Shown here one piece after another: positions 803-61,877 of a stretch of DNA of 64,000 nucleotides. The position numbers were made by a program, and so were the translations under genes. Numbering within the stretch: position 1 is the first letter of the stretch; each line of letters opens with the position of its first letter. Location of the stretch: assembly GCA_051294905.1 (NCBI GenBank), contig CM119372.1:36952001-37016000 (forward strand). The letters are read 5' to 3'. Source of the stretch: Botryllus schlosseri. Taxonomy: Eukaryota. A model generated the notes under the pieces. The model was not told where the DNA came from. It did no database searches and was given only the letters and a program-made list of their open reading frames with translations.

Positions 803-3800
803 ACCGCTGAGAATTTTTCTCGCAAATATTTCCATTTCATTCCAATAGTTCACTCTCATCTCGCTGTACACATTTGTAAGCTCGGTCGCATTGACGGTAA
901 TACCCAATCCCGCGGCAAGTTCGAAGACCGTCTTCGGGTCGTCTGGTACAATTTGGGTTTGAAATTGGTAACTTGACATAAAGGGCAGTAGCTAAGTAGC
1001 AACATTTACACCTACAATGTCATACTCTTGATCGCTCTTCGATCCGTGTAAATCATGGATCTCAGACTTAAATGTGCTCGCGGGCCAATTTCCTAGTTTT
1101 TGGTGACGCCGCGGGCCGCAGCAATAATAATAATAGGGGTATTCGATGTATCATTTCCATGTAGGCCTTATTTGGCCGGACCGTGCAGACTGGCATACCA
1201 AAAATATCGTGAAAATGTATTTTACTGTTGTACTATTCATGCTTGGCACGAAAAAAAATCACATTTTCAAATATTTGAATAAAATTATTTTTGTGCTGGG
1301 CATAATTTGTAAAAAATAGTGAGTTATAGACACCATGCGAGTGAACCAATGCATCTTGACATCTGAAAAGCTGTCGCGGCATAATATTGCAGCTTGCGGA
1401 TATGTGACGTGCCACAATTATAGGTCGAATATTTTAATTTTAGCCACAATTGATCTGATATCAGAGCATATGAGCGGTGTATAGTCTACTCAGGATTTAT
1501 GGTATAGTTCTGATAAGTAGGCTATTGTTAATGTCATTGCCAAAGTCGAATTAAATCAGCGTTAGATTTGCCTTCGATTGGACAGTATTTTTTGCAATCA
1601 TACCCCTTACGCTTTCAATAACTTTTCTCGTACCCCTTGTCCATATTCAACGCAATTTCTGATAGCACTTATATTAAAATTAAAAAATTTAGTCACATAA
1701 ACTGCGCGTAGCGCGAAGAATATTTTTCGGTTGAATAAATTAGCCCAGAAAATGTTCCATTTTTTCTTGGTTTGTAAAATGGCAGTTTGATAGTATGGTG
1801 CGTCCAGTCATTTTCATTTTATCACCCAGTCAGTCTGAATTCGAGTAATGGTACGAACGGTCGCGCCCATGTCCAAATCACAACTGTCAGTCTCGAATCA
1901 TCAACGGGTCATATTTTATAATCATAAATTAGAAATGTTACACAAAGCTTATCTTCCACCGCATGGTAGCTTTTGCAAGGGATGTGATAGTGAAGGTTGA
2001 TGAAATTTCAGGTTTTTGGAGTAGTTTTAGAGTGAACATTAGGTTCTCGAATTTAAAAAAGATATGTCATAATTGAATATATTGTCGAATACTTTAAAAT
2101 CGAAAATGACGTCACTGGCCGCACAAAATGTTTTCGCAGGCCGCATGTTTGAGACCCCTGGCGTACATGACGTTTTTCAAGCATACGTGATCAAAGTAGT
2201 CAGCTGTAGTGAGTAAACTTTAGCACTAAACTTCTACTGAAGTACAAGTATAAGAACTAGTAATTCGTTGACCATGTTAAAACTACTTCAAGTAGAACTA
2301 TAATACGGAAAGTCAGCAAAATATACTCAGGCAAGTAGCTTCAAAAATAGGAATTCGTCGCAGGTCGAATACTCAAGTCCTCACTCTAATCAAAACGAAA
2401 CTTGTGTACAAATCAAGAAAGGGCATACGTCCTCTACACCAACTGACTCACTGACCACAGTGTCCAAGTAACAGGGATCTTATTAAAAATGAAATACGGA
2501 GGGCACAGGGGACTCACTTCATACAGATGAGGAACGAAGTTGATGATACTATGATAACAGTCGATTGTATTCTCTTGGTAATTGCCAAATACGCATATCT
2601 ATTAGGATAAATCTTGCAATATCACCGTGAATCGTTTTCTCACCAATTTTAGCTCTTGAAGCGCAAATGCTCATGTCAAGAGGCGGGTAGTGCATGACGA
2701 AAGCAAGGCACATCTCACTTGTTGTGGGTAAACCTCCCTGAAATATATCTTATTTCAAATAACTACACCTACAATGACATGCAACAACTTGATCGGAACC
2801 GGCGTGATTTTATCTCTATCCTCCGTTGCATAGTCGCATTCCAGCGTCAATGAATCTCCCGCTTTCAATATTTTTGGTTCCTCAAAGTACAACGCTTCCT
2901 GATAGTTGAAATCATAGTATTCATCTCTTGCCATAGCTTGCAATTCGGTGCCGTTCCTGATTAGTTGTAGAAGACAAAACATGGCTTTACATCAGTGTTT
3001 CTTAGCCTCTGCGCTAATGACCACTGACCACTGACCACTGACCAGTGTTCGAGTCACACCAAAGACCGAATCAGTTGACTTGACATAAGACAAAATGTTC
3101 AGTATCGTAATGTGACTCGTCACACTGGTGACTAGAAGGTAGTGAGTTGGGACTTCTTCCTATACTTACTACTGACGAAAATGGTAGGTTTTTAGATTTA
3201 AAGGGGACGGTAGAGGCCGTTTGGGCATAGTACGTTCTTGCTCCAAAACGGCGCACCTTTCTAGGCATTGACTGTTTATGAAATTAATATAAAACCAAAT
3301 CAAGCATCGGTGTTGAATATGGAAGGAATTACTCTATAATAAAGTTCAAAATATATTGACACTAATCATTTTTGCCGTTGTTCTGAACACTTAGAAAATC
3401 AGCGCTAATTATAGTCATTCCGATCTCAAGATCTCATCATTGCTTTCATTTGCTTCACGTGCGCTATGCTAAGAAGCATTACAGTGTGCCCACTTTCAAC
3501 ATAATAAATGTCTGATGATTTAAAGCAATAGAGGGCAAACTACGGCCCGCGGTCCGCATGCGGCCCGCAACACCGTTTTGTGCAAGCCGTGAAAGCCTCA
3601 AGAAACGTAAAATTACCATAGTATTTTCTATTTCATTGATGGCGCGATGGCCCGACCTCGAGGCCCATGAATTTCGAAAGTTTTCAATTACTAAACATCA
3701 CAAAATGTGATCGCGGCTTACTGACTCTAAGGGCGAAGATAATGAAGTTATGATTGGCAATGAAGTCTATTATCGCGTTCATCAGGATTTATCACCCCAG

Positions 3801-6800
3801 GATTACGGAAATCGGTTGATCGCTGCGCATAAAGCTAGTTTTGATGTCATGATTTAACAAACTATAACAAACTACAGAAAACTATAGGTATCTATAAAAA
3901 CTGCGTACACTACGAACTCTGCGTCCACTGCGTACCATTCCTACGCGCAAATATTTCTGATGATGACCATGCCGATTATTTCCCATGTAATGGCTTCGCT
4001 AAACAATCAACGAATTATGTACCTACCATTGCAGAGCTATTATCAATATTCTATAATCCGTTTCTTAGCTGTACCGTACTAATTGGACGTGACTTTCATT
4101 TCGCAATGATGATAATTTTACCCATTACAGTGACAGTATCGTTATGAGAAGGCTGCTGTCTCATTCAACAAATTGACAACTGACAGCCAATAACGCGTTT
4201 TCGCATTATGATGCCACAGTTTACACCATTTGATTGGAAACTCGAGAAACCTCGACTAATCATCGCGCGTAACCTTTTCCAACTGTATGCGTCTCGATCA
4301 GCGGTATTTAATCACACGATGAGCCTTCTTCGGATCAGCTAACTTTATGATCTCCGCCAAAAATGCGTCCCGATTAACAGTTTTTAATTACATGATTAGC
4401 ATTCTCGCGGATAAGCTAGCTTTATTATCTCCGCCCTCATTTACATCCCGTTCCAAGAATAGGGACAACAGACTTTCGACCCTGATTTCAACAACTCGAG
4501 AACGACCAGCTTATAAATTCTCGTCAATATTTCTGACACGTTTACGTTATCATGAAATCAATGTTTGGTTTGCTTTAAATTTACAAATACATTAATATTA
4601 TTTCCACGTCGTCGGTCACCATAATATAATCTAACAATATCGAATTTTGGCTTTCATCACAATTTTATATCGTGTGGCACGCAAATGGATTAAAATGTTG
4701 AATGCGGCCCGATAGCTAAAAAGTTTGCCCACCCTTGATTTAGAGTAACGAAAGAAAATTGTTAGTATACTTACTTCATCGCGAATCTGATATGGTCTCA
4801 CGGTCGTTAACCCTATATATCTGAGTCCATACCCCAAGGTTTATACGACAGCCTGATTTGACACCAAAATAGTAAAAACTTATTATTGTTAATTGTCCGT
4901 CGATCCCGAAATAGTTGCACATTGTTACTAAATTACTTTTAAAGTACCTCATTTCCTTCAAGTAGAGTAAAAAATGAAAGATGTGAAAGTACTCATGTAA
5001 TTAGCTTAAAAAAGTGATTTTCGTTGACTCGTCGCATACTTTCAGTATTAAATTGGACGTGATATACTATGCAAATCTAATGATACGTGGCCATGTAAAA
5101 ACCGTTATAGATACACTACAAATAGCTGCAATTTTATAAAATTCGCACAACGTGATGCAATCTTTTTTTCGCAAAGTTGTTACGATAATTTCATCAGTAA
5201 AAGTTATGAGCAACTTGAAAAAAATTGCTTTACAAATTCAATCGCATAAAAATGAATCTTGCTTCACGGACTGACTGTGCTAGTTGAAGTGAAAGTAACA
5301 CACCCACTTGAGTAGGGGGCGCACGTAATTATGTAAAGCTTCCAAAAAGTCGAAGTACTTCGATATTGACCAACTCTGCGATTAACTATTGTTACCGCGT
5401 CTGTTTGATAACATCATGAATACGACGAGAAAATTATACTAGCCTGCATTACCTGTAATGGCGTAGCCTCATGGCTCGTCCGGCGAGATGCGAATGGAAA
5501 AATACTCCGAAGACTTTTACCTCGTCTAGGCCAGACTTTTCCATTCCCTGGAAAATAAATTTCAGCGTTTGAAAGTAACGTAGCCTGCCGCTAACACCGT
5601 AAACTACACAGTAGGGTTGTCCATAATTTGGAAAATCTCAAAATTTATGCGTATCCATGTCTCATTCTACGGGTTATAGTTAAAAAACGTCAATGGACCT
5701 GCAATTAGCTCACAGGAACATCGTTAACATTTGTCTAAATGCGTTTGAAAGTAGCTGCCGTAGAGCAGGCGTGTCAGCGACCATAGAACGGCAAGCAGAC
5801 TTGTAATCACGAAATCACGGCGTTTGATTGGCTAATCTGTTATGCTTCAATGATCACGACGTTGATCTGCTGGTCAAGGAGTCGGCTAACGACGTTGATT
5901 CTGAAAGCGCATTGTAGATTGGTCCGCAAATAATGATTTAGGATTAATTCAGAACATGCTGAGTTACGAAATACATGATGAACAAAGAACAGCTGCTTCA
6001 CAATCGCTTTAAATACATGACTGGGTGGCTTATTGTGAAGGTAACCGTTGTGGCCCGTATGCCTTGATTTCATTCATGGAAAGCGGAAAAATATTGGAAA
6101 GGCGCTTATGCAAGTGGCAAACGAATTTCTAGTTTCAGAGGGGATGCACCATCATTGAATACAAATATAAAACTTAACACTGACACTACTTTGTCTGATC
6201 TTATTAGGCTGTTGTCGTGGTATATAATTGAAGTCTTGAATGCTCTAAGGGCTGGATGAATCTCTCATTTATGCTTGACACTTGTCAGATTACTGCAGCA
6301 TAATGAATCATACCCGCAAGTGCTTTTAAAGTCCTCAATGATGTCGCACATGAGGTCTAAAGACGATCACAGCTATGCCGGTAGGACCAGCAAAAAGACA
6401 GTTTGCTTGCATTGCCTAGCATGTCCTTGATGAATCTTAGATCATTACCGGCTGCATCACGACTAATGCTTGAATCAAACCAGATGGACATAAAAAGGAT
6501 GTATTGAAGCGGTGTGGTAGTTACTCTTCTTCATAAATCCAATGTAAGCTACCTGGTCGGCCCACATATCTTCTGAGCATACAGGAATCTCACATGGTAT
6601 GCTGCACCAGTTTGGCGATGTCTAATATGCCTTACCTGCACCCAGAAAAGCAGGACCACTTGGCGCAATCTCAAGCATATCAGATATATATTTCCGGGAT
6701 CCATATACTTAGCTCTATAAGTTCACAATCATTCGCTGTTTCACCTCTGTCATGCCTGCAAGAGGCTATTGTTGCGCTAAATCTATCAGTGCCTAGTCTT

Positions 6801-9800
6801 AACATTAAAACATTCAATGACCAGATGTCTCATTTTATTATCAAATCATCGACGAAGGCTACAATAATGCGCTTACAGAATCATTGCCGTTAGCGAACGT
6901 CTTGAACTAGTAGAAGCACATAATCAGCAAGCCGCTGTGGTAGTGATCATTCAAGCATAGCTGATTATCCAATCAAGAGACGTGATTTCGTGATTACTAG
7001 TCTATTCGCCGTTCTATGGTCGCTAACACGCCCACTCTACGTCAGCAACTTTCAAACGCATTTAGACAAATGTTAACGACTTTTCTATGAGCTTATTGCA
7101 GGTTCATTGACGTTTTTTATCAATAATCTACAGAACGAGACATGGATACGCATCTTTTTTGACATTTTCCAAATTATGGACAACCCTACTACACAGACAT
7201 AAACTGGAAAATATGTCGTGAATGAACCAGAATGGTAAAATTAGGTGGATTTCGTAACTCATATTTTGCGCCCGCCACTTACTGTTCGATAAACATACTT
7301 TTCTTAGAAATTAATATACTATCCCATATATATATATATCCCCATTCACCTTACTCAAACACTCATCCCGGCAATATCCTCCAACCCTGTACCTGGTTGC
7401 TCCGGGAGGGATCCATATCGTAGATATCGTTTGCGAAACATCGAATAACGATGACAAAAATTGCGGAGGTTCTCGAACGAATGAAAGGCGCAAGCCAGAG
7501 CTGTCACGGAACTCTAAAGAGAATATAATTCCACAAACATGTTCGGTAAAGTCATTTCTTGCTAAGGGGACCCAATTATTATATAGTCATCACCAGTAGT
7601 ATATACCCCTTGGCAAACCAGAATATTGACATGTAACCGGATGCGGAAAAGAATTACCTCTTCTATTTTGGAATAATCGAGTTTATTAATACTTTCAACT
7701 GCTTAATCAAATGGGTATGTTTTGGGTTGCTTCTGCGTCTACTTCGATTTGTTGTTAAAAACTAATTACTTTTCTACTTTATGTTTTGTGCAGTAGAAAT
7801 AGTTTTAGGGTTTGTCATCATGACGTTTACGACGGAGATTGTAATTAATACCAAGTGAATTAAGCACTGTGTCATGATAACGTGCCTATGTTTTTGAAAA
7901 CTTAATTATTAATTACTACTGACAAATACTTGTGTTCTTTCTAAACTTCATTTTCTATGTTAACTTCAAGTAGCCTTGACAAGACTTGGTAGTCGCTACT
8001 ATAATTTGTAAATGAAAATAAAGGTGTGGCGGTAAAATTAATTCTCCTAAAGTGCCAAGTATGACTAAGTTTACCCCATGTTGAGCTGTACAATTTGAAA
8101 CAAACGCGGAAGGATAGTATGAAAACATACTTCTAGTGGAATTGAACGAGGTCATGGTTTATGAATTTCTCATTTTCTCCATTTTTCAATGTTTTACCAA
8201 TTGGCTGCGCTACATGTTACTAAAAGTTGATTTACCAGGATTACAGCTGCTTTAATAAGGGCAGGGTGGTCGCACTAATATCTACGCCACTTCGCTCCTA
8301 AAATTCGTAATAAGAAAGAAAATGATAGAAATCTGGAAACTGATTCCAACTCCGACCACACCAAAAGTGCGACTCGGGCTCGGACCACAACGTGGCCACA
8401 AATTTTCCGAATTCAAACACCAACTCCTCAGCCGACTGAATCATGACTGTTCCATTCATAGAATGTGCCATACACAAGTAAAATTATGTTGTTTAGGTCA
8501 AAGTATGACGCAGTGTGCAGAGGTTCGTATACGCAGGGATCATCGAACGCGCAAAGGGTGAACCAGCTCCCTTGGGTGACGAAGATAGGTTTCTAGGTAA
8601 GATAGAATATTACCCAGCCTCGACCTGTTCAATAAGCATTTTCCACTGCATTCTCTATTCACTAATATTTCTCATTCAGCAAATCTTTATGATGATAAAT
8701 GTTCTCTTGGATTCCGATGTATATTAACACATGCGTGGATGTGGATTGGGAAATAGCACACATTTAAATGCTACTCTTATTATGTCTCATGACTTGACGC
8801 AGCTTCGAATACAATTACGAATCTGCTCTCGACATTGAAACGCGTTATGTTAGTTGTCGAGTCCAGCAGATTGTTATCGGATCGTCGATACTACCGAGTC
8901 GATATCACACTTTGCACGAAATAGCGGTATATGTTATTAGACTGCCACAGCTAGACTGGAAAATTGATCTATTATTCCATAACTTTCACGCAGAAGAGGT
9001 CAACGTAGTTATCGCTGGTCACGCCGTACATTTCGACTGAAGTACAAGCATAAGTAAAAGTAGTAATTTCCAAAATATTTATAAGTGAATATACTTGACC
9101 TGGTTTAGCATAAAAACTGAAAATTGTTGAGGTGAAGTATAAACAGTTTTGAAATCATAACCAATTTTTGTAATTAGCGCAACTACGCCAAACCTACTTG
9201 AGTAGCCTAATCTGAATCTTTTGAAATATGCCTGCGATATTTTAAAATATCGGCTGTATATACCGGGGTTATCAGTTATTTGTTTTATCGGTATCAGCTC
9301 GTCCAATTCGATATTCTTCAGACTCTAGATTAGTGGTTCCCAGCCGGTGGAGAATTCCACACTGGTGGGGAATTCAATTTCTGGTGGGGAATAGACGCAT
9401 TGTTAAACATTATATACAGGATAGTCTTCATATTTGTGGAGGCACATGGGCGATTGCCATTACCAGTTAACTGCTCTGGAATGTATGTACCAAAAATGAT
9501 AAATTGAAGGTGTCCTCAGTGGACGCCTAAATATCTTTTTTGGGGAGTTTGTCCTCTTTTTATCTGAGAAGGATATAATTGCCACGAAACATGCGACTCC
9601 AACGCGGCGAACATCGGAGATTTGTAAAACATCGGTAGGCGAGTCAAAGTGATAACCTTTTTTTAGTCAACACAATGCTATCAGTCGAAAAGTTTTCAAA
9701 ATCACCAGTTTTCTTGGAGCTTTCAGAGTTGATAAAAAGTGTCCTCTTTTTAGGATGTCAAAATATGGTGGCCCTATTTTAAAGAGTATATAAGTGTTTT

Positions 9801-12800
9801 GGATAGAGTGGAATGAAGACTCGGAATAAATCTGAAGTGGGGAATGATGACAAAAAGGTTGGGAACCCCTGCTCTAGATCGTTGGCATTGCGGGAATGGA
9901 TTACCTCGTTTTTCGGGGTTATCATAGTGCATCTCAATCATGACATATTGAGGGTGGCTGGTGGCTCCACCGAGAGGGAATCCACTGTTTTCCGGAAATC
10001 GAATACCGCTTGAACCTACGGCCCACCCTCCTAGCACTTTGTTACACCCCACGCTGAATGGGTGAACCTGTTCGTAGCACTTGTAGTCGATCTCTAGTTG
10101 CTCCTCTGTCTGTAGATGACAAAGGTAAGAGCATAAGGAGTGATACATCGCACTGCGGTAGAGTTGCATTTACTCACCACATCTACATCGCATAGATATA
10201 TAGTGGCGTGGTGTACATTCTTTTCATTTCCCTTCTGCAACAGTGGCCGGATCTGTAACACGATCATGGCTATTGTCTATTTTGACATGTAGTGTAACTA
10301 CCGCATTCGATCAACTTTGAAGAGTTTCTTGAAGGCAAAAAACCTCAATACACCATTGAATATTCATATTGCAATGAACACACCTATTTTAGACCGACAC
10401 TCGTCAGAGCTAATCATCAACAACGGTAAAGAATTGGGCAGGACCTTGCATATCTACCAAAGTATCGCTAAGTATGACGTCATCGGCAAAGAGATCGCTT
10501 AGGCCCAAAGGGCTATTTTGCATGATACACGAACTCTTTCTGTTGGCTGGAACCAACAAGATTGGCGAATTTTGATAAAGGTCGACTCCAAGGCACACAC
10601 ACAAACTTTTGAACGGCATCTTGCCAGTATAGAATTACATGAGCAGTTGGTACAATGAAATAAAATCGAAAGATTCACATTTAGTATATCCGATATGATT
10701 TTCTCACAGCAAAATCACAGTATTGCTAACTTTTTACAACCACTTGCAGCATTACAACATTGGTCGCTACTGAACAGCTGTAACAACAATTTGAAACCAA
10801 TCAATGAATTTCCGCATCACCCTGCGCGACGTAACCAGAAGTGGCCAGACACGAATTACTTCTACTTTTTTGAAGTACTCAAGTAGTTATCCTCTACTTC
10901 TAGTACTTACTCAATATAACTATTTTTTCCGCTTCTTCTTTTACTATACAATAGTTTATGATTTACTTACTTACTTTTCGCTATTTAAAGTGTGTGAAGT
11001 AGAAGTATTATTATATTCTTCCAATGAGCGAGAGAGAAAATGAGACGGAGAAATTTAGGGACTTTTTTCGCGGAGTAGCAACAATAATAATTTAATTATC
11101 ACAAAAGTTAAGGAAAGCTCATGATTTTCGTTGTGCTTCACGCGAAATGAATATCAAGTGACAATGAATGTTTTCACAAAGTGTTAGTCAGTATTATTTA
11201 GGTAGAAGGTTCTTTTCAAACTGTATTGTCGTCCATACGACATGTATCATCGCAGTCAATATGGCTCATAACAATATTTGAAACTATGTAATCGTCATCT
11301 AGCATTCTAGTTGCACAGTGCACAGCGAGTGTTTAAATAGAAAAAAGTGGTACTCGACTTTTTAGCGTTAGACTTTTTAGCGTCAATCACCGTTGAAACT
11401 GTATGGACAAAATACATGAAATGTATTTCCTCTTTTTAAATATTGTATTTTTAATTCTCTTTATGCACGGTAGTTACAGAGAGGTATTGCAATTAATCTG
11501 AGTTCTTTTGTCAGGAGAACATGCACGTAGAAGTTTAAAATTACGTAGTAAAACTCAATGTAAATGGGATTTCACGAGATACCATATTGTTGTTTCACGT
11601 AACAATCATCGCGCAAATCGGTAATGCCCCATTCTGATACAACTTGGTATTGCTTTTTGCCTCAACGGGCCTCTTAATACGACATTAGCTGAAATGGAGC
11701 TCCGGAGTATATAAAAGTATGAGCCCCTTTTCCAAGCAAAACTGTCATGTGCATCCCACGATGCGGCTTAATTCTTATGTGTAGAAACTTTGTACTGAGC
11801 AGCACGAACTCAGCTCATTGTATCATCCGAAGGGCTCAGTTCCCGCCTTTTGACACCTCGTGAGAACGTATTTACGACTGCTTCTCATAACTACTTATTT
11901 ACTTGCTAACTTTAGTAGATTTTAGCGTCGCTACTTCTACTTTTACTTGAAGTGGTTTTAGGATGTATTTAAAATGACTTCTCCTACTCGTTCTTGAGTG
12001 TATTTTAGTTTCGATACTTATACTTCTATTTGAACAGGTTTCTGAACCTCTTTGGCTACCTCTGATGTAACTGATTCGATATCATATTTGCAATGCTTCC
12101 TACGCTCCTTGTTACGTCAACATTACCTGCAGCAAGAACCAGTCAATAATGTACACGTCGAGAGATAAAGTCTCGCCATCTCATCCGTGTAGGCGGTGTC
12201 TTATGAAAGCCTAGAAGTGAGCCGTGCTACAAGTCGGCAGCTACAGAATAAAAAGCAAGGATATGGGCCTGGTGTAAATGACCAGAATAGTTGAAAAAAC
12301 CCATGAGCACCTCAAACAACAACAACAACTCTCTTGAGGTTTGTGTATCTGACTATCCCGTGTTTAGACACGCATCAACTATATTTCTTGTACTATGTAA
12401 TATAGAGTGTGAATCTTGTCGATATCGCCACAACAAACACTTAGATCCTAAATTGAATATAACTTAGCGTCCTGTTCGTCATTCCCGCGGACTTCACATT
12501 ATCCGTCCCACGTGTGTTTACTGTGTTAGTTAGGATATTCAGGCTAGATAGTGCTGACGGATACTTACTTCAGTAATATAAATTGTTTCATTAGCTTCTG
12601 CGACTTTGATGAACTTGCACAAATAGTATGTTTCGGTTGCGGGAACAAAAAATTCATCAGGACCGACGTCCGTATACGATTCCTGTCGAATTTTCCCTGA
12701 ATTATATTGTAAGGATGAGGTTTCTGCCAATCTTCGTAGGTAAAAGCGTGTTGTACGGTGGTATGACGTTACGGATCTAGTGGGAAACATTTATCAAAAC

Positions 12801-35160: not shown

Positions 35161-35169
35161 GTTATTACA

Positions 35170-35265
35170 TATTAAGTCTGATTTATGAACTTGTATTTGC
35201 TCTGACAACATCTTAATTGCTGGTATAGGGGTGGAAATAGTAAGCCGCATATCACAATACATATT
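35170..35265 (-). pseudogene. Buster-type hAT transposase extreme C-terminal remnant
   Basis: CDMRLTISTPIPAIKMLSEQIQVHKS resembles the DLRxxLS..PxIxxL..QxHxSH terminus of Buster/Charlie transposases. Confidence 0.4.
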
Positions 35266-40479: not shown

Positions 40480-41030
40480 AATATTCTAAAGCTAGAGTTA
40501 AGCTGTGGCTTCGAAACCCTCAATAACTTACAGCATGGAAAACTGAATTCATTCAGTTTTCCATGCTTACAGCAACGCATCTTGTTATTATCCAATACGA
40601 AAACATCGCGTCGATATAATATCATCTGTCTCGGAACATTCAGCCGCACGTGCTCAGGCTCAGATGTGTCTGACGCCACTATGTCTGGAATATGTATGAC
40701 GTCACAATGTACTGTTCGCTGGAGCAGCTACGAATTGATGATCAAACAATCCACAAGGCCATTCGCAGGAAAAAGGTAAAGGACGTCTACTACTCTCGTC
40801 TCAATGGCAAAGGAGCATGGCGGCTAAACACCAGCTCCGGTGTTTCGATATATAGTTTGCATCATACATGCGTTAAGGAGTCTACAATGGTGGCAGAACT
40901 GGTCCAACAGATAATTACACAAAATATCATACCTGCAGTAAAACTACATAACATACCAAATTCGCTTGCCATGCTACTATTGCTAGACCTTGATGTCTCT
41001 AAGGATACTATTTATAAAGCGATATAAACG
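40480..41030 (+). pseudogene. Degenerate Mutator (MuDR)-like transposase N-terminal remnant
   Basis: Across two frames: LELSCGFETLNNLQ..SNTKTSRRYNIIC, then GAWRLNTSS..IYSLHHTC..DLDVSKDTIYKAI. The spacing resembles MuDR-type F..C..W..HTC..SY..A motifs; recognition by eye only. Confidence 0.4.
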
Positions 41031-42260
41031 ATGGTATCTGCAATGCCCAAATGTTCGGATACCATTCACCGATTAGCAATCAGCACGGCCATCGATGTCG
41101 TAATTTGGTTGATGATTGAAACATGATGTAATTACGAAAATCATATATATATATTATATATGTCCATAAGACCGTAAGCGTGTAAAATGATCGAATTGTG
41201 AGTTCAATAGCAATGTTGCAAATAATGATTATCCAGTAAATCGCTTTTACGAATGCAAAAGTGAATCCGGAATACTTATTATCCAGTAAATTGCTTTTAC
41301 AAATCTAAAAGTAAATCTGAAATACTGGTTATCCCGTAAATTGCTTCTACGAATTCAATCTGTAATTTTTTTACCCTCTAAAAACAAGTAAATTTACTTT
41401 TGACGTGCCCGTATATTAATTTAACGGGCATTTACCGTTAATATAACTGACGGGACAAATTTACCGGTATAATTTGGGTAAATCTACGAATATTTCTAAG
41501 AGTGCACCCCTTACAATAAATATGGATCGGCGAGCAGTCATTTTCTTTAGGGGTTCTGAGTTTCCTGCTAAGTATTTTATTTCGTAGTTTCAAATCATTT
41601 TTTCTTATGAAATATGTGTTTTACGTTCCTCAATCGTTTTGCTAAAGTTCATCGGTATTTCTTGGCTCGATTTATTCGTTTCTATGGGATGACTATGCGC
41701 CAAAATCGCTAAAATAATTCTTATAAAATATCAGTCGGCATAAGTGATCTAACCACGCGAGTCGAGAAATTATTTTCAGATAATCATTGGATTTTGTCTG
41801 CAACATAAGTTTTTGCTTACCACCATACTTTTAGTTTCCACTCAGCCCACGCGCTCCAATGTACCGGTGGAGCTGATGCAGGTGACTACGAAAATTTAGG
41901 GAAATAAAGGAGTCATGTCCAATTGTCCATGCGTAAACACTTTTCTGCGCGTATCGCTCATTGGCTGTAGTACCCAACACAGTGAACTTGAACATTTTTA
42001 AATTAGCCACAGGAGATCGCATGAAAGGAAGAGAAACTATTTTGTCGCGAGAAATTCAACTATATAATATGATATATATATTAAACGATCACTTCGGTGT
42101 TGTCCCGTGCTCTATGTGCGCTTAGACTCTCCGCGTCTCATGCTCGGGTCGCGACCCCATACTTTTAAAATCCCTTCTTCAGAATGTGCGATGACCATTT
42201 CGGCAGAAAAGTCTTGGCTATTCACCAAACAAATGATACAGAAACAGTTGCCCAGTACTA

Positions 42261-42266
42261 TTTATT
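42261..42266 (-). terminator. Candidate polyadenylation signal of gene B
   Basis: AATAAA on the minus strand about 60 nt downstream of the TGA at 42328-42330. Confidence 0.45.
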
Positions 42267-42327
42267 TCGCAATTATCCAAAAGGAGAAATTCGTTCTGTC
42301 AGTAATAATGATCATACAGTAATAAGA

Positions 42328-51300: not shown

Positions 51301-54300
51301 CTAACAGTTTTTTGACCAAACAACTTTTTAAATTTTAAATTTTGTAAAGTATATCTAGAGAGTAATTTTGTGACATGCTTACATTACATTATGAATGAAA
51401 TATCATGACAACTTGGGAGAAGAGTCCATGTATGATGGTAACCCAATCAATAACTGCCTAAAGTATGTGACTCACTGACAGAAGTGGTCAGTAACGAAGT
51501 ACTACTACTTTTTGAAGTACTTGAAGTAGATTTTTCCTACTCACACTACTTTTTAAGTAGTTATGATTTTAGACTACTTCTACTTCTTCTTGACAGTTTT
51601 CAGTGTTGTAGCCAAAAATAAGCGTAGAATACCTACTTACTTACTTAATTGTGAACCACCACTCCTACTTCTACTTGAGTAGAAATCCCGGCGTTACTTC
51701 TACTTCTACTTGAGTAGCGATGGTGACTACTTTGACCACCTCTGCTCACTGACCAAATCTACTTTATAACTATTCACATGAGTACTTTTCATATCCTCAT
51801 TTTTCATTTCTACTGATAGTAGTAGTATTTGAAATTGATACTTCTATTTAAGATTAAAGAAAAATTTACAGCGTATCTTCTATTTTAACATCGGCAGCAA
51901 TGCTGAATACTTTGACCAGCTCTGATGAAATCAATCTTTGACATATGTCTTAAGCGGAACGATGTCCAACATCCATAGTCGCCTATCCCATCGATGTTCA
52001 TTGATCCAGCAGGATAACATAGGCTCTAATGATGAAATTCTCATAAATCCATATTATGCATACCCTTTTTCTCGGGGTTATCGTAATGCATCTCAATCAT
52101 CACATATTGCGGGTGGTCGAGTCCACCGAGGCGGTATCCGCTTTTTCGAGGATATCTCATCCCTGTCGAACCTACCGCCCACCCCCCTAGTAACTTGTTG
52201 CACCCCATCGAGAACGGGTGTATATCTTGATAGCACTGGTACTCTCGTTGAAGCTGTTCCTCCGTCTGCATGTATGGAACATTTATGATACGGGGCATGA
52301 TATTCGGAATCTTCGCCACTTACGATATCCACATCACAAATGTAGGTGATCATGTGATGCACATTTCTTTCGTTTTCTTTCTTTATGATGGGTTGCAACT
52401 GTAGCACGATGAAAGGTGGCATATCATTACTGTAGACGCCTGCGAAGCAACTGCAAGCGCAGCCATACGTATCATGCAGGGTAGAGGTCGGTACCCTATG
52501 GCTAGCGAGCCCTATAAGGCTCTTCACAGTAAATTATATGGATCGTCGATAACTTTGAGTAGCAATTAATTAGCATCTTATTTATGAATATTGCTGCAAC
52601 TTTTTGTAGATTATCACAACGGCCAAGATCACTATTTTTGTGGAAGCTGAGGAAGGTATTTGTGAGCTCACGAAATTGGCGTATCCAAAAGTTTCAGGTT
52701 AGGATCTTGGAGCCCTGCCGTTGAAATCCCTAAAATGTATGTAGTTTTTTTTTGTTATAGGGCATACGGCACCTCGAAGAAGATGGCGCGTACATAATTG
52801 CATGGTCTTTTATGAATTACCATGTAACATATATAAGGCGACTATAACTCTTTTGAGAAAAAAGGTTTCCCACTCTGGTAGGTGAGAAAACTGATTATAT
52901 TGCAAGCAATTGGAAAATAACCTAATTTCCAATCTAGAATGCACTTCTTGATGTTTGTTTTTTCTCTGTCAATGGATTATGACGATGTCAAATGCGTAAA
53001 GAAATTATCCATGCAACTCGGAGAGAAAAAATCTGTAAGTATCCTCTCAAGTGCAAATGGAAACCACTATTCAGACACACGTCAAAATTACTAAAAGCAG
53101 AAATCTAACACAAGACTTGTTTCAGGAGTAAGAAGTTTTAAGAAGATCATTGGATAAAAAGTCGCAGGCTTTGTCACTAAATCACGAGTTGTAATTTTCA
53201 GATTTTCAGGATTCATCGCTGCCACTAGCGCGTTATTGCGCCCTAATACGTGCGATGTTTCGATATCTAGAATCTAGTTTGTCATAGTCTAAAATTTACG
53301 CAAGACATGACGCAGATCCATAACAAACCACATTATCCTTGGCAAAACTTGAGAAGTTGAGTGAGTACTTTTCCGGATGCAAAAAGTGTAGCATTGGAGG
53401 CGTCAATACCTTGAACCTAACTCAACTTGCATAAATAGTGTAAGTAAAAAAAACTATTCGAAAAATCCAACACGGAAATAAGTATATTTACATACGCTTG
53501 TGACTGTTTCGCGGTCCCAATGCAGACTATACTTCACTCATGCCACTGCACAACTAATTATATCACTTACTCCAGTAGCGTAAATAGTTTCATTTGCCTC
53601 TGTTAGCTTAACGAACTTGCAGGAGTAATATGTCTCCACCGGGGGAACGCGGAAGTCACCTCCGCGCAGGTCGATATGTGATTCCTCTCCAGTATTCCCT
53701 GTAAAAATTTCCGCCGGGAAATGTAATGACTTTTTGTCAAGCCGTGATATTGAATATTAACGAATTTGAAACCTTAAATAATTGAAATATTGCAATATTT
53801 AGGTCATTGATTGTAGGCATACGTCTTGTCGAAGCAGTAGAGATGGTCTTTACTCAGGTTCAGAGATGTTCGGTGAAAGTGGTGAGCGTTGGCGCTCAAG
53901 TAACGTAATAAATTACTACTCATGTAAAAGAGTAAGGTGCTATTTATAGGAGACATGTCAAACCTACTTGATGTGAATTTCGAATACAAAAGTACAAAAA
54001 TTACCCAGGTAAGTAGTTTCAAAAAATATGCTTGGTTTTGACAGTTCGCGTACGTTAAGCAGATGATCAGAGGATCTACTCCACCAATCACAAAAAAGAA
54101 ATATTAACGTCCTAATGAAAATAAAGTGACGTAACAAATAGGAGCAACTAAGGAGAATATGTACAATCGGTGCAGAAACAATGCGGATAAACTGTACAGG
54201 TGAATCGAGGCCGGAAGACATTACAAGCTAATCAAAGACACGATTTACAATAAGTTACCAAGTTTAGCATCGAGAAAAGAGCAAATTATTCTGTTTCGAT

Positions 54301-57300
54301 TGTTATCAGGCCATTGTCGGCTCAATTATAACCTACACAGGATTGGGTGCAGTGATTCCCCCTTACGTGAACAATGTTTGTTGCCTGGAACCGTCGATCA
54401 TTATCTATTGAACAGTTTTATGTATGTAAGGCAACGTGCGAATCTGAAACGCAATATTAAAAATGATAGTATTTTTAATACAACAGAATTATTAACACGT
54501 AAATAGCCTACATGTTGGGGCATGGGATTCATTATGTCAAGAAAACACGACGCGTAATTTAAATGTTTATGTTTCTGAACTTGTAGTGTAACTACAAATC
54601 ATTCAAATATGTTTATGTAAGCCTTCGCCGATGCTTTTTCTCTCATTCGGTTATTTATTGGATGACAAGTTTGTGTAGCTGTCAAATGCGTGGGACGGTG
54701 TGACGCAAAAAGCTTTAATGTGAAAAGCCTCACTATTTCTTTTTCTTTCGTCTTTACCAATAATAAGAGTAATAAAGGTGCATTCGGTAGCAATATATAT
54801 ATTCTTATAAACATATATTCATTTTCCATGATATAGGGGCTTTTACACTTGGTTTTCATAACTATTTGACACATAAATCTGGTGAAAGCATACCCAAAAC
54901 CAATTATCAATTTTAAACAAAATGAAACCTGCAGAATGTAAGTACTTTTGCCTGAAAAGCTGCTAATTAGGAGAAGTAGTAAACCTTCTTTCGTACTCCG
55001 ACAAAGTAGAGGTACATACTAACGTGGCTACGGTTTTTTACTATTTCCATTTTCTCCTGAGTTTTTTAGACAAAACCACTGACTATTTTCACTTCTTTTT
55101 TTTATATTTTGTGAAGCAAAAGGAGCTCGGCAGATGTTTGTAATACTTTCAGGAGTGAATTTGACATAAGTTGCGATGGGATAGATGTGGAATATGTTTT
55201 GAAATATGCACCTAGTTGTATTGTCATTAGTCGGTATTCGTCAGTGACGAAGATACATCCTGCAACTTCGAGTATAGTCACGATTAATTGTTGGGAGTCT
55301 ATGCAGCCCATCGGCTAAATGTAACTTTTGATCTTACTCCAGTAATTTCCCAATTTTCATATTCTACTCCCACTCGAAGCAGTTTGGGAATGTTCCGAAA
55401 ATCGCTACGTCTACCAATAATCCAGTTGAAATTCATGGTATTACTTCTACTTGAGTACAAATCCTGACTATATTTAGACACCACTTGAAATCACTCAATT
55501 GATTAGGCTCTGTCCAGTCAGTAATGAAGCAATATGTTGGCACAAATACTATACTGCCAACAATATTTTATTCCTCTCCACAGGAATATTTACTCACCTG
55601 CGGACGCTTTGTATTCAGAAGGATATATCAGTTGCAGACTTCTGCCACCTGTATGACAACATGTCCAAAGCGTCACGGGTCGATATTGCGATATTGTAGT
55701 TAATAATTTGTACCTCGATTCCGGTGATGGTAATATCTGGAACTTGGGCTGTGATCTTTCAAATCTTCTTCCCCATACGACCACAGTACTCTATATGTTG
55801 ACGGCTGGCGAAAAAGTATCATCAATGTATCGCATGAGGGTGGAATACCGAGTACGCTTCCAATCAACCCATATTATCATATCTAAGATCGTAGTCAGCT
55901 GGCATGGATGAGGAAATCGAACGATATTTAGCATGTGGACACATTACTTCACCCTTACAAACGCCGATGACATGTCTTTTCATATGATGTACTATCAACG
56001 GAAAAGTTATAAAGCACTCAATGAATATGCTATATTCGTTCATGAAAAGGAAAAACAGCGTTGCTAGCTACATGTCGACATTTTTTGTTATACCTTGCAA
56101 ACAGAAAATACTGTTTTAGATCCTCGATATGCGAATGTTTGTTGATTTCAATTTGCAAACAATTTACCAGATTATAAAAATATGGAGGTTTATGTAGACG
56201 TCGATATCACCTTGTAATGAATGCGTATTACGGCTTACCGAGGGACAGGGGTGCTTAGAACCCTAAATTTGTTTGTGTTCTTTGCGTGAAACCGCCTTAA
56301 ATTTATTGTAATCATACATACTTCTAATTTAAAATTTGGGATGTTTATGACTAAAATAAGATGCTATCACTTTGAGCAACCTAATGTCTAAAAAGAGCTC
56401 ATCAGTTTTGCAAATGGTGCGTCATTAACATCAATAATTGAAAAGCTACCAGAGGACAAAAACAGGTCCGCCCGGCCCCCGTCCTGGTCATTCTTCAATT
56501 ATATCAAAAATAAGTGCTGATAATATAAATTATGGTGCTGCACATACTGATTTTTCCCACCAGTTGTACATCCATATCATCGGGGTTGCAAGTTAACCGT
56601 TTTCGGCGAATTGTGACTCCTGTATGAGTTCCATTTTCCCAGCCGGTCACAACCTCAACATTTTGTTCGTCGTCCACATCCGGCACCCCGTTTCTATCGG
56701 AATGGCAGTCCTGCAAATATCGATCGCAGCTCCTCAGCACCCACATATTTCAACTGTAGCTTAACATAGACAGATCTGCCATAGATATAGATCAAAAACA
56801 ATGTCAGACTGAAATTACTGGTATCAATGTGAATAGAAATAGCTCAACCTCGAAATTTGCTAATTTCATGACTATAAACAAAGTAGAACTACATATGCCT
56901 CATCACTAAGGCGTTTTGTCAAAATTTTGTCAAAATTGTATAAAAAGTCAGAAATTTTTTGCAACCTGCGTTTCGTTGGTATCATAGATGTTTGCATTGT
57001 CGGTGAACTTTTCATCTGACATTTTACGGCTTGCAGCCTACTTTATGGGCCTGCCGTTGTAGACGGTGCATTGTCTGCTCATTGTGAATCATAAACGGTC
57101 AAATAAAACGAATGGGTTGACATGGTGTTATGCGCAACGTATCGCGATATCTTCACTGACACGGTGTGTCGCCAGCACTGTACGCGAAACTTCAGTGTTG
57201 CCACCCAACAACCGCCGCTGTTGAACGTTCTTTCCCCATTCTTTTGCAAGCTACTTAGTAAGGACAGACCCCTTCTACTCGACAATGTAGGAAACTATTT

Positions 57301-60300
57301 TTCGTTGTACTGCAATAAATTTCAAATAATTGTCCCATAATGCATAATGTAACTACTGGAATTCTCCATAGGTCCAGATTTCACTAAAATAAAGTTTTTT
57401 TTCGTGTAAAAATTTGACGCTTTTCAGTCAAAAAGTTTTTTCAGGTCAAGCTACTTAATAAGGACAGACAGTTTCAACCAGAAATGAAGAAAAGTAGTAC
57501 AAGTCTAACATTGTGTGCGAAAAAACGCCTAATTTACTTACATGAGGGCAATATTTTGTAAAAATTAAGTTTTTTTAAGGTAATGTCAGAATTTTCATTT
57601 TTAGTTCCTGATTTTTACGTTTTTAGGTAACAAAAAATCGCCCTACTCATCACACTTTCTAGTTGTCGTGTTCTGTGTCCGTATACTCCTTGTGGCTATT
57701 GTGATCCATGATAACCCTCGGGGGACCAATACACAAAAATAAAATAATTACTCACAACTATAGAATTGCTACGCTTATATTGAACACTTCAAAGAGCACT
57801 GCAGCCATAGGGTCGAAATTGATCATGAGCAAGTCGTGATTTCTAAATTCTAATACAGGCCTAGAACCTTTATAGAACATTGACAATATCAAGAACTGAG
57901 TCAGTTGTGTCGTTCCCGAAGTCGACCACAGATGGGCGGGGAAGAGAATACTATGATCACTGATCAGTGATAGACTTTTGTACAGAAGTGAAGATGACCT
58001 TGGGAGCTGAAAGATCATCCTGAGGAATGATTACACTATCATGTTGGACAGTTTACACAAGCTCCATTGAACAGATAATCAAATTATAATCCCGTAAATC
58101 CATTAGTAAGCCATAACTGGGGAAGATCGCCTACTTGGTCCACAATTGTGGTACAACGGTAGACTATGTGCACTAGGGCTGTTCAAAAATAACTTTTTTC
58201 CCCGGATTCAATCCATTCACTGAATAAATGTCAGGTTACTCTAAAAAAAGCTGCTCACCAAATTTGATTCAATTCGAACAAGTATACGACTCCTCAGATC
58301 CAATTAAAATTTTTAATTTATTGGGTAAAATTAGAAAAAATTATTTTCAAATTTTTCTGTCGACCCCACGAAATTGTTGAGTTGTCTTCAAAGACGATGC
58401 AAAACAAATTTGAGTCAATTCCAAGCAGTAGAACCGGAGATATTTGAGTTTTTCGTCGATAATTTTACCATCAAGGATAATCCGAGAATTATCAACGAAA
58501 AACTCAAATATCTCCGCTCCTACCTACTATCTAAGATTAATAACAATATTAGGATGCAAATAATCAGCCATATAGTACATTTTCTGTCGGACAGCAAGAT
58601 TTCAGTATATGTAAGTCACTCACCAACACATAAGCACCGTCTTCTTTCACACCCATCATAATGATATCCGCCCCATTCATGGACACTGTACGGCCGAATC
58701 CAAGTCCTATCCACCCGGTAGTTGGCGCTACGATCTAGTATTTCACGAATATGACATACATGCAGATATTGGTGAGTTAATGTTACTTTATGAAAACCTG
58801 CATTGTAATGGTAGTACTATCAAAAGCCCAAGATAGCGTCACGTGCGTGTCTTCATCTAATATTGCGACGAACGGTAACGCCGGTTCCTGTTCATTCGGC
58901 CTGGTCAGTTTCGGTGATGTTGATTTGGCGGTTGCCGGTATGGATAGGGTAAAGATAGTTGTTGATCCGATATCTTTGAAAGCAAAATCGTGTACTAGCG
59001 GAAATATGAATGTAGCAGCATATACCTTCGGATAGAAAACTTTTGCAATTGAGGCGCATCCTCATATAATAAAAAGCAGCAGTTGTGGAATAAGAGTATG
59101 TATGAAAACAATCACAACACCATACACATGCCCATATTGGCGAGTCGCAACATTATGACCTATAACTAGGGGTAGTGTGAATGTGAGGTTCACGTACGCG
59201 TTATTTGTGTGGACTTCAGAAATCTGGATGTTCGCGCTCACAAGCGAACCTTGGTAGGTTCTGCACTGTGAACATTTTTCCTGTATTACAATTTTCCACG
59301 TCATTCTAACTTGTCTTAGGTTGAAATTCTTAACATTTCAAATTCTGACCACTCTCCGCAAGGCGCTGGCAGCATGAAAAAAACGCAGCACCAAACGAGC
59401 ATGCACCTTCAGCCTTCCGTTTGTGAATTTTTTGTGACTCTCTGCATCGAGCTTTGCCCGCAATCGCACAATAGCAAGAACGGAACATACAACATGTAGG
59501 AAGTCAGCGAATTGTGCTTAGTCAACATATCAAGGATATTCACTTCAACGAAATTGATGTAAAGAATGCAATGATATATAATGTAAAAAATCTATTGGGC
59601 GTACGGGATCTAATTTGATTTGATATCCTTATTGGATACCCTTATTGTATCATAAAAACCAAATCCATCCGATTGTGGTGTTGGCTACTGTATAACTTGT
59701 TTTTTGGGATATTATCTGGCGCAATTATAGAAACCGGTGTTTTCACTCTCAAGAATTTATTTGTCCGGTCTAGCCAAGTCCTCGTTGAAATTGTTGGCGA
59801 CGCAACGGAAGATATTGATTTTGTGGAATTATTATAGCATTTGATTGTTCCAGTGGATACATTAGGTGACGCTTAAAAGGTCAGCATATAATTCAGCATT
59901 GTTGCATAATGTGGCCCGGGTCGTCTCTAAGTATCATGTACATCGCTATATTACTTTACGAAAATGTAGGATTGGAATTGAGGTTCACGTTCGCGTACAC
60001 ACAGAACATTTCAAAAAGGTTCGCGTTCACTCGAACCAGAACCTTTCAGCGATATTAATTTTGAAACATTGTAAGATTTAGGCCGATGGTAGAATAATAT
60101 ATGACGGAATATGCCATAAATACTTCAATTTAGTAGCAATATAATACTAATCTGTGTTTATTTAATAGCCCGAGGGCCCTTTCACTATTAATGTGACTAG
60201 GTCACCTTATTTGACTGTTTGTAAATTCTAATACGAACTTCTGCAGAAGTTTGCCAGCGTAACACTTCAGGGCCGGTATCAAGACGACAATTCTTAAACA

Positions 60301-61877
60301 ATTTTACGCCAAACACAATACCACTCAATTTTTATTTCATTGAAATATACTTAATTCACCTTTTGAAATCGGGTCTTCTGCGTTTCCCAACAGCACCATT
60401 TCCACGGCACCTATAAAGCGAATAATAACATTTCCCTGAAGAATAAAAGTTTTCACATTGAAATTACTGCATCTCTACTGTATATATACCTCTGTTTCTT
60501 CCATGATAGTCACTATTTTGCCATTCTCTTTCTTTATCCGAATTTCCGAATGCCCAAAGAATGGTCATGTCGCCATTCTGGGAGAGAAAGACATTTGAGT
60601 GGTTATCGTACTGGGAATATGGACATAATAAAAAAAGATGTACTTGTTCATGTATCAGTATAGAAGTGGAATGTTCAATATGATTGAAGAGGTCATATCG
60701 GTGGAAAAACACCAATACTGTAACAATGTACTGCAATATAGGTTTATATCTGATATCTCTTCGCTTGGGCTCTGCATTACATACGTTAATATATAATAAA
60801 TAACAATACGGCAGGGATTATTAAACGTTGAGTGTATAGGTTATATACAACGTATTTCAACGCAGAGGCGAAGGATATTGTGCTTGGCAAATTCTGCATG
60901 TACCGGACTAATCACCAAAAGTTCTCTATGGAATCTATTCTCGAAAACGTGATACGCAGGTCCTTTCAACGGTAAAGCTTAATCGCAACTGCAATACTGT
61001 ATACTTACAGTAATAGTCCTGTCGAAATTGTCATCCAATGTCAGCGACCTTGCCACGATAATTGAGGTATGTGTAGAGTTTTCCCTCGCGCTTATAATAT
61101 CAACATTTTGTTCCTGATCGATGGTCGGTGGCCCGTTGTATTGTGCGTGGCAATCCTTAACAACACATAGATTAGTAAGAAATGCCTTTGAAATGCAATA
61201 TATTTATTCGTGCCAACACGAAAACCTCGTATGGACATGAACATAGCCAAGGTACGGACATGACGTCTACAGATCTAAAGAATCAGGAAAGCTAAAGAGT
61301 ACAAATATATCATACGACAATGTCAATTACGACAATGTCAATTGTGACAATAGGGCGTTGCTGTTTTACTCTCATGGTGGTAGACTACCATAGTCATTTA
61401 TACCAGTGCCGTGCCTTTTCCCAATTTACAACCACTAACTTTCCATCTTGGTCCATATGTAACACACTACCTACGCAGATGGCGTGAGCCTAGATATCGG
61501 TCAGACTCAAACTCACGGCTCAATTGCATTGTGGCCGTTCATTTACCATTATGCTGTTTGAATCCTTAAAAGTAACATTAAGAATATTTTGAAGACTTAT
61601 AGGAATAATGGAGTGGTGTTTGCATGATTGCAGTAACAAAATGTGTAACAGTGCAATCAATAACAGTGAAAATATATTTTCATAATAGAAAAATGTGCAT
61701 CTCAGTTTCAATTCAATTGAAATTCATCCACCTTCCGTAAATATCAATCCTGACAAATCAACTTACCCAAAGGTAAGGTTCTCCATTACGCACTCCGCCA
61801 ATAATCAAATCTGCATTAGCCATGGTCTTCCCGACGCCAAATCCGATACCAACCCATCCCGCAGTAGGTGCTGTAAT
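42328..61877 (-). CDS. MOXD1: DBH-like copper monooxygenase (MOXD1-like) paralogue B: 2x DOMON + Cu monooxygenase domains + C-terminal hydrophobic anchor; exon 1 not found in the window
   Basis: Exons: E2 61767-61877, E3 61009-61155, E4 60490-60577, E5 60360-60410, E6 58798-58994 (acceptor slightly uncertain), E7 58624-58734, E8 56561-56710, E9 55714-55804, E10 55598-55648, E11 53571-53698, E12 52324-52398, E13 52064-52265, E14 51059-51222, E15 49743-49837, E16 48181-48337, E17 48005-48098, E18 47403-47542, E19 43471-43566, E20 42328-42513 (TGA). 2334 nt, open. Most exon lengths match paralogue A exactly (111,147,88,111,150,91,128,75,164,95,157,94,140). Motifs NVHHM, IEMHYDNP, FHSHLAGR, SEMC; C-terminus IMSGLAAAMVILILGAAVAVTRKT. 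Confidence 0.93.
44098..46767. mobile_element. Fold-back hAT (hATm-like) element with about 775-bp inverted arms, each encoding a transposase C-terminus
   Basis: Termini TAGGGTTGTTCAGAATTGACCGACTTT; TSD ATACACAG (44090-44097) / ATGCACAG (46768-46775). Arms about 44098-44875 and 45765-46767 (right arm interrupted by a MITE at 46326-46550). The homologous ORFs 44596-44796(-) and 45821-46102(+) resemble the VVNDxAER..LLQVVE C-terminal region. Confidence 0.8.
46326..46550. mobile_element. MITE family M1, short copy nested in the fold-back arm
   Basis: Reverse-complement match to 51479-51744; TSD CATATATG / CATATTTG. The empty site is visible in the opposite arm at about 44305-44320. Confidence 0.8.
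49272..49655 (-). mobile_element. tRNA-derived SINE, family 2 copy b, with an internal about 110-bp insertion
   Basis: Matches the 34358 copy on both sides of about 49390-49500. TSD TGTGGACGC at 49263-49271 and 49656-49664. Confidence 0.72.
51479..51744. mobile_element. MITE family M1, short copy
   Basis: CAGAAGTGGTC..GACCACCTCTG; perfect TSD CTCACTGA (51471-51478, 51745-51752). Confidence 0.8.
56907..57645. mobile_element. hAT-type MITE, same family as 33978-35160
   Basis: TAAGGCG../..AAAAAATCGCCCTA; perfect TSD CTCATCAC (56899-56906, 57646-57653). Internal reverse-complement match to 34100-35100; a partial copy is also at about 43840-44010. Confidence 0.78.
59167..60050. mobile_element. 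Second copy of the 29895-31250 family
   Basis: Shared CCACTCTCCGCA..GCTGGCAGCATGAAAA and GTCCTCGT.GA.ATT.TTGG..GGAAGATATTGATTTT blocks. Confidence 0.65.

Follow-up and report, generated by a model that had tools for sequence, protein, structure and literature searches.

A tandem array of predicted two-DOMON, MOXD1-like copper monooxygenase genes with a replaced inter-domain segment in Botryllus schlosseri

The window examined here is a stretch of 64,000 nt of the Botryllus schlosseri genome (C2:36952001-37016000, where C2 is contig CM119372.1 of the 495-Mb assembly GCA_051294905.1). It contains no N runs and includes most of two spliced genes, A and B, which are head-to-tail neighbours on the minus strand and whose predicted products are copper monooxygenases related to MOXD1. 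They are the last two members of an array of five full genes, all head-to-tail on the minus strand at about 36.83-37.02 Mb and lying, in rising order, as E, D, C, A and B. All five genes would encode proteins with two DOMON domains and a copper core in which all ligands are retained. The feature specific to this lineage appears, from the alignments, to be the loss of a near-universal segment, YT..LR.YDAG, which probably forms the hinge between the two copper domains. An initial annotation, made by a model from the letters of the window, had described A and B as intact MOXD1-like enzymes with a diverged active-site neighbourhood. Here we present a follow-up of this proposal using gene models, RNA evidence, trees and a structural model.

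Gene models, expression and constraint

Comparison of the minus-strand open stretches of the window with each other identified about 16 colinear conserved coding blocks in two series, running from 28255 to 797 (A) and from 61886 to 47385 (B), with DOMON exons repeated internally within each series. Single exons match the Pfam domains DOMON (two sets of exons, PF03351), Cu2_monooxygen and Cu2_monoox_C. PF01082, which corresponds to the CuH domain, scores 64.4 bits with an A exon and 55.8-57.8 bits with a B exon (cut-off 30), while PF03712, corresponding to the CuM domain, scores 43.5 and 30.4 bits with two B exons (cut-off 23) and is also above cut-off with A exons.

Gene models were obtained with a purpose-written spliced protein-to-genome aligner. 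The guide, P0153, is the 852-aa product of a 2685-nt intron-free Logan contig (run SRR32906210) and is a full-length orthologue transcribed in a related species; its identity to the window genes is about 52% in tblastn alignments and 57-61% when the full spliced models are compared. When only GT donors were permitted, the alignment included micro-exons of 1-16 nt. These were removed by permitting GC donors and raising the intron cost, which exposed real GC-AG introns. One of these is located in A at 24727/24726, where B has GT at the equivalent site. Copies C, D and E have in common a conserved CAG/GCAAT donor after a 95-nt exon, whereas A and B have GT there.

A is modelled with 21 exons and B with 20, and neither reading frame is interrupted by a stop or a frameshift. 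Exon lengths are equal or differ by multiples of three everywhere except in the linker between the two DOMONs. Both the models and the window self-comparison agree with the description of two paralogues of matching exon architecture. The proposed gene limits, 803 and 61877, indeed fall on exon boundaries, but A continues before the window start, with its last two exons 8-103 and 3518-3706 bases beyond it, and exon 1 of B lies about 2.2 kb past the window end (at about window+66164..66298). The last two exons of B (43566-43471 and 42513-42331) are within the window, with a stop codon directly after 42331. Similarly, the proposed length of about 810 aa is near the lower end of the predicted range of 811-852 aa, which depends on the choice of linker exons (813 or 852 aa for A, about 811 to 840 aa for B). 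The long linker of the guide drew weak Ser/Thr-rich "exons" into the models of A (109 nt) and B (125 + 16 nt), and the choice of linker exons is left ambiguous. In A, a perfect GTGAGT donor closes the fifth exon at 48 nt, so the 109-nt exon would be out of frame. The coordinates of the principal features are collected in Table 1.

RNA evidence was drawn from contigs of two older runs and from raw stranded reads of a 2026 bulk RNA-seq run carrying the same species label, and was compared over one stretch of about 6 kb in the 3′ half of B. Six B introns with GT..AG ends on the minus strand were seen in RNA (52323-52266, 52063-51223, 51058-49838, 49742-48338, 48180-48099 and 48004-47543) and all six were reproduced exactly by the spliced aligner. 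First mates map mostly to the plus strand over the B exons, as minus-strand RNA in a stranded library predicts. A and B are real genes, with expression established for at least B.

Between A and B, identity is 62% (dN 0.28, dS about 1.7, dN/dS 0.16). The dN/dS ratio of C and D is 0.15, and dS is saturated for the other pairs. From these values, the array copies are judged to be old and under purifying selection.

Table 1. Principal features of genes A and B and of the neighbouring copies C and D (window positions unless preceded by C2)
Feature	Position	Strand	Basis or remark
Gene A, in-window part, exons 1-19 of 21	803..31422	-	ATG 31422; spliced alignment to P0153; no in-frame stops; signal-like N-terminus
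Gene A, last two exons	C2:36951898-36951993 and C2:36948295-36948483	-	spliced alignment
A, first DOMON block: exons 31422-31282, 28246-28136, 27728-27582, 26676-26589, 26524-26477	26477..31422	-	model; GTGAGT donor gives 48-nt fifth exon
A, second DOMON block: exons 24887-24727 (GC donor), 24667-24557, 23951-23802, 23061-22971, 22908-22861	22861..24887	-	model
A, 75-nt exon, CuH His-His pair (codons 10213-10208)	10178..10252	-	aligns to DBH His262/His263
A, 205-nt exon, third CuH His (EMHY, codon 9929-9927)	9905..10109	-	PF01082, 64 bits
A, 164-nt exon, predicted rebuilt hinge: SGLRL strand, Pro-rich loop, LFDVSQ strand	7350..7513	-	motif, alignment, model
A, 95-nt exon, CuM His-x-His (HSH, 5496-5488)	5453..5547	-	spliced model
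A, 94-nt exon, CuM Met (SEMC, Met codon 2713-2711)	2644..2737	-	spliced model
Gene B, in-window part, exons 2-20	42331..61877	-	spliced alignment; six introns confirmed in RNA
B, first DOMON block in window: exons 61877-61767, 61155-61009, 60577-60490, 60410-60360	60360..61877	-	single-exon Pfam DOMON and model
B, linker and second DOMON: exons 59060 or 58973-58798, 58734-58624, 56710-56561, 55804-55714, 55648-55598	55598..59060	-	acceptor of first exon ambiguous
B, 75-nt exon, CuH His-His pair (52359-52354)	52324..52398	-	downstream 58-nt intron in RNA
B, 202-nt exon, third CuH His (52088-52086)	52064..52265	-	PF01082, 57.8 bits; both flanking introns in RNA
B, 164-nt exon, predicted hinge: SGMRL strand, loop, IFDVSQ strand	51059..51222	-	motif and RNA introns
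B, 95-nt exon, CuM His-x-His (49786-49778)	49743..49837	-	RNA introns
B, 94-nt exon, CuM Met (48074-48072)	48005..48098	-	Pfam and RNA introns
B, last exon: C-terminal hydrophobic anchor, short basic tail, stop	42331..42513	-	equivalent to helix 832-851 in P0153 model
Copy C	C2:36910035-36925250	-	before window start
Copy D	C2:36883249-36899540	-	before window start

Domain architecture, copper ligands and the replaced segment

The predicted order of domains is a signal peptide, a first DOMON (D1), a Ser/Thr-rich linker, a second DOMON (D2), the CuH and CuM domains, a helical region and a C-terminal membrane anchor. Two DOMON matches were found in each of A-E, and the closest full-length relative also matches the Pfam domains. 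At the C-termini of A, B and P0153, a stretch of about 19 residues that is strongly hydrophobic precedes a basic tail. This hydrophobic anchor is missing from C and D, which end about 40 residues sooner; the array may thus encode both membrane-bound and soluble forms.

As initially proposed, the copper ligands are kept, and the motifs VHH, EMHY, HSH and SEMC are located in B exons 12, 13, 15 and 17 respectively. All six ligands (the CuH His-His pair and third His, and the CuM His-x-His and Met) are present in A-E and align, via P0153, to DBH His262, His263, His333, His412, His414 and Met487. Cysteines matching DBH C232, C269, C283, C295, C390, C394, C466, C488 and C503 are also retained in all five (DBH ligands and disulfide cysteines from PMC4846438). 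A cysteine matching DBH C154 is present in the second DOMON and not in the first, which identifies D2 as the canonical DOMON and D1 as the addition.

Among solved structures, the best match by sequence is human DBH (4ZEL, E 3.9e-51), spanning the second DOMON through CuM. In an AlphaFold model of P0153, built from a 40-sequence alignment (predicted local distance difference test, pLDDT, 83; predicted template modelling score, pTM, 0.70), both DOMONs are folded as sandwiches and the linker (173-237) is disordered. The two copper domains are followed by a helical region and, at the end, by a helix at 832-851. The template modelling (TM) score of this model against 4ZEL chain A is 0.87 by target.

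We also observed that, where cytochrome-type DOMONs have their haem ligands, a Met and a His (P0153 Met293 and His386) are at least 90% conserved in MOXD1-like proteins. Human DBH has neither, and the first DOMON of copy E has a Val at the Met position.

The initial annotation drew attention to the context of the CuH His-His pair and to the replacement of a YDAG motif. The peptides are found as described, all on the minus strand (VHHATIYLC at 10216-10190 and QFLSSLFDVSQ at 7463-7431 in A; VHHMITYIC at 52362-52336 and EVLSSIFDVSQ at 51172-51140 in B), and both features differ from the family norm. The Glu which follows His-His-Met in DBH is indeed absent, the family copies reading HHAT, HHMI, HHVT or HHVI and never HHME, but this is normal for all MOXD1-like proteins.

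To place these changes in the context of the family, 117 other single-unit members were aligned, and 84 columns were found to be conserved in at least 80% of them. The six members of the clade (A-E and P0153) all keep 64 of the 84. Among the columns changed in all six, five are clustered within 15 residues (A 553-567) and correspond to the T, L, R, D and G of YT..LR.YDAG....G; A, B and P0153 depart from the consensus in a sixth column of this segment as well. In the 117 proteins, the consensus positions are conserved at 90% (T), 81% (L), 97% (R), 84% (D), 86% (G) and 94% (final G). Neither A-E nor P0153 carries the segment in its MOXD1-like form. In the YYP motif, Tyr is likewise replaced by His throughout the clade, a change shared by two of the three Styela clava two-DOMON proteins, the third having Leu.

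The replaced segment aligns to DBH residues at about 352-368. In the P0153 model it forms a loop between strand 548-554, at the end of CuH, and strand 563-569, at the start of CuM, and this position makes it the hinge between the domains, outside the first shell of both coppers. Hence the expression "active-site neighbourhood" was too strong: according to both the DBH alignment and the model, what has been replaced is the hinge together with the first CuM strand and not the copper shell. In DBH crystals, this pair of domains occurs in both open and closed arrangements (PMC4846438), and a change in the hinge could plausibly affect domain closure.

Relatives, age of the DOMON doubling and genomic surroundings

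Relatives were searched in a library of 1.8 billion proteins, in which two short Logan fragments and P0153 came closest to the window genes. The nearest named entries come from Styela clava, with three proteins (772-819 aa) that carry the annotation "DBH-like monooxygenase protein 1 homolog". A further search used P0153 as the query, cut to residues 250-760; the whole-length query drew low-complexity words and gave 11 matches. In the whole-protein tree, A-E and P0153 form a clade which is sister to these Styela two-DOMON proteins (support 100/100). A Styela single-DOMON protein is next outward, and the enclosing tunicate group also includes proteins from Ciona, Phallusia and Clavelina. This group is nested in the MOXD1-like clade, apart from DBH/TBH, with support of 96-100 on the key branches; the branch separating MOXD1-like proteins from DBH/TBH has support of 100/100 in one tree and a Shimodaira-Hasegawa-like approximate likelihood ratio (SH-aLRT) of 100 in another. 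The family genes neither fall in the DBH/TBH clade nor carry its HHME motif, and A-E have two DOMONs in place of the single N-terminal DOMON of MOXD1-like proteins. P0153 groups with A and B and not with C-E, which implies that the separation of A/B from C/D/E predates that species split.

The tree of DOMON domains alone includes a D1 clade and a D2 clade, each with support of 100/96 and each containing Styela, P0153 and A-E. Since D1 groups with D1 and D2 with D2, the Styela domains included, the doubling took place a single time, ahead of the separation of Styela from this lineage, and so is older than this lineage. This qualifies the proposal of a lineage-specific expanded subfamily: expansion is supported by five genes in tandem and one dispersed, but the two-DOMON architecture is shared with Styela clava and was in place before the split. 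The trees identify the family as an expanded tunicate branch of MOXD1-like enzymes. The initial annotation had wondered whether already described two-DOMON orthologues might have the same residues; the Styela relatives, however, keep LRKYDAG, and within the databases searched the hinge replacement is new. No relevant publication was found in a literature search for two-DOMON copper monooxygenases and for DBH-like monooxygenases in tunicates. The Styela double DOMON is therefore present in predictions and undescribed in the literature searched.

Two other long entries, from Ciona intestinalis (P0239, 1108 aa) and Clavelina lepadiformis (P0241, 890 aa), were considered as multi-DOMON relatives and rejected. 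They read catalytic-DOMON-catalytic or DOMON-catalytic-DOMON and are merged neighbouring single-DOMON MOXD1-like genes, which implies that tandem MOXD1-like pairs also exist in other ascidians. True N-terminal double-DOMON forms have so far been found in Styela, in this genome, in one related transcriptome and, independently, in a nemertean.

The suspicion that further copies flank the window proved correct: three full copies lie toward lower coordinates and a partial one toward higher coordinates. In copy E, the D1 exons are separated from the rest by at least 12 kb and the last exons were not detectable by spliced alignment. A sixth two-DOMON gene, on the plus strand at C2:31837785-31880500 and 5 Mb from the array, was recognized from exon-wise search matches (48-75% identity to P0153). 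Search matches likewise place family loci at C2:14.54, 31.03, 31.84-31.89 (the region of the sixth gene) and 37.79 Mb and on C12, C16 and C83, more distant members of the family among them. The partial copy on the high side resembles B exons 1-3 (signal peptide and most of D1; about 90% like B) and lies on the minus strand at window+82052..85745 (C2:37034052-37037745), 16-19 kb upstream of B exon 1. Two conserved Trp residues are changed in it, to Cys and to Arg, and nothing convincing follows. Judged by its sequence, it would be a fragment in decay or else serve B as an alternative 5′ module.

The 10-kb intron of A between exons 22908-22861 and 12696-12569 includes an uninterrupted 1229-aa open reading frame on the plus strand, opposite to A (14733-18422), with a reverse-transcriptase domain (RVT_1, E 3e-30), coinciding with a strong AT-skew anomaly at 14-18 kb. 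In B, the intron between exons 47542-47403 and 43566-43471 includes a large inverted repeat (44095-46770, centred near 45.4 kb) with three nested arm pairs of 197-248 nt which are 84-90% complementary. This is probably a foldback-type element or one resembling a miniature inverted-repeat transposable element (MITE). In addition, the intronic stretches 48500-48699, 49300-49499 and 51300-51899 of B have very high RNA depth and many loose read ends, a behaviour typical of multi-copy repeats resembling short interspersed nuclear elements (SINEs) that are transcribed elsewhere and not from B.

Probable function and comparison with known systems

Taken together, it is very probable that A and B are functional members of a tandem array of genes for MOXD1-like, copper type II, ascorbate-dependent monooxygenases with an orphan substrate. 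Their products are predicted to be type I membrane glycoproteins of the secretory pathway, both topology and glycosylation being deduced. If catalysis by A and B proceeds, as their sequences suggest, by the mechanism of DBH and PHM, ascorbate-derived electrons would reduce both coppers, O2 would be activated at CuM and a C-H bond of the bound substrate would be hydroxylated in the lumen. Some observations weigh against this conclusion. Ten of the 84 conserved columns are changed in all six clade members, which could alter or weaken catalysis, and one clade-wide change converts a His conserved at 93% in the family to Tyr (A residue 444). Moreover, the exons for the D1-D2 linker are ambiguous in A and in B, the GC donor of A at 24727 has a weak context, and a second bulk RNA run has nothing on the B exons of the stretch compared.

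One alternative is that A and/or B are decaying duplicates in a large array. Copy E, with its scattered 5′ half and undetectable last exons, the mutated partial copy upstream of B and the GC donor of A would all be compatible with decay. However, the reading frames of A and B are intact over 20-21 exons, their dN/dS ratio is that of constrained genes, and B is correctly spliced in RNA, the six introns also answering the concern of the initial annotation that expression or junction support might be lacking. GC-AG introns are in addition conserved, and evidently tolerated, in C, D and E. We therefore consider pseudogenes to be highly improbable. It is also very unlikely, if slightly less so, that the proteins act mainly through their DOMONs, for example as haem-b electron carriers or ligand binders, with the copper core secondary. 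Such a role would fit the near-invariance of the Met and His at the cytochrome-type positions in the family alignment, the resemblance of the DOMON fold to the cytochrome domains of cellobiose dehydrogenase and the match of some relatives to PF16010. But conservation in these proteins is highest in the copper core, and the DOMON of DBH itself has no haem ligands (PMC4846438).

A more substantial question is whether A and B, as functional monooxygenases, still do what their ancestors did. They may simply have kept the ancestral MOXD1 activity, the extra DOMON and the hinge reflecting structural drift or regulatory tuning and the array providing dosage or tissue sub-functionalisation. Neither the copper shell nor most of the conserved core positions have changed, the Styela sisters carry two DOMONs yet a normal hinge, and the main difference between C and D on one side and A and B on the other is the anchor missing from C and D, which suggests soluble versus membrane forms. 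On the other hand, five to six near-invariant hinge positions (80-97% across the 117 proteins) were changed together and then fixed across dS-saturated paralogues, and this looks like a retained functional shift and not drift. We regard continuity of function as a credible possibility, although not the one we would favour. At the other extreme, A-E, the gene at 31.84 Mb and P0153 might constitute a functionally new branch of copper monooxygenases, in which a Pro-containing hinge would alter the opening and closing of CuH and CuM, and the extra DOMON, on a mucin-like tether, would serve as an electron-relay or substrate-capture module for a tunicate-specific substrate. One candidate reaction would be beta-hydroxylation of DOPA- or dopamine-containing peptides toward the dehydro-DOPA units of tunichrome-type compounds. 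We consider this elaborate proposal unlikely as a whole. A different substrate for A and B is in itself possible.

MOXD1 is one of the few animal copper monooxygenases which are still orphan in substrate. The family described here offers natural variants of it, some anchored and some not, which combine an added DOMON and a replaced hinge with a complete set of copper ligands. They provide material for studying the roles of the hinge and of the DOMON in DBH-type enzymes, as well as the substrates of MOXD1-like enzymes. The analysis also provides a correction for databases, since long entries named "MOXD1" in Ciona and Clavelina result from the merging of tandem genes.

The closest known system is that of Styela clava, whose proteins P0006, P0151 and P0152 (NCBI automatic annotation) have two N-terminal DOMONs followed by Cu2_monooxygen and Cu2_monoox_C, like the window genes. 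They differ in that they are only about 39% identical and keep both YT..LRKYDAG and the His at A residue 444; at least two paralogues were seen in Styela, compared to six in this genome. Vertebrate MOXD1 (monooxygenase X) is an orphan copper monooxygenase of the endoplasmic reticulum membrane. It shares with A and B membership of the MOXD1-like clade apart from DBH/TBH, the catalytic ligands and the absence of the DBH-type Glu after His-His, but has a single DOMON, about 613 aa and a normal hinge motif, with about 29-37% identity. Among solved structures, human DBH (4ZEL) matches best in both sequence and fold; the match runs from D2 through CuM, with the same ligands, core disulfide cysteines and C154-type DOMON cysteine. 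Identity in the structural alignment is about 21%, and the window proteins lie outside the DBH/TBH clade, have no HHME, and are set apart from human DBH by the added DOMON, the altered hinge and the anchor at the C-terminus. PHM shares the fold of the two-copper catalytic core (TM up to 0.78 by target) and has no DOMON; the hinge of rat PHM contains Pro and is without LRxYD. Finally, a nemertean protein from Tubulanus polymorphus (P0195, "DBH-like monooxygenase protein 1", 791 aa) also has two DOMONs in front of the copper core. It lies outside the tunicate clade, and its two DOMONs pair with each other on the DOMON tree, each being the closest relative of the other, which makes this an independent doubling.

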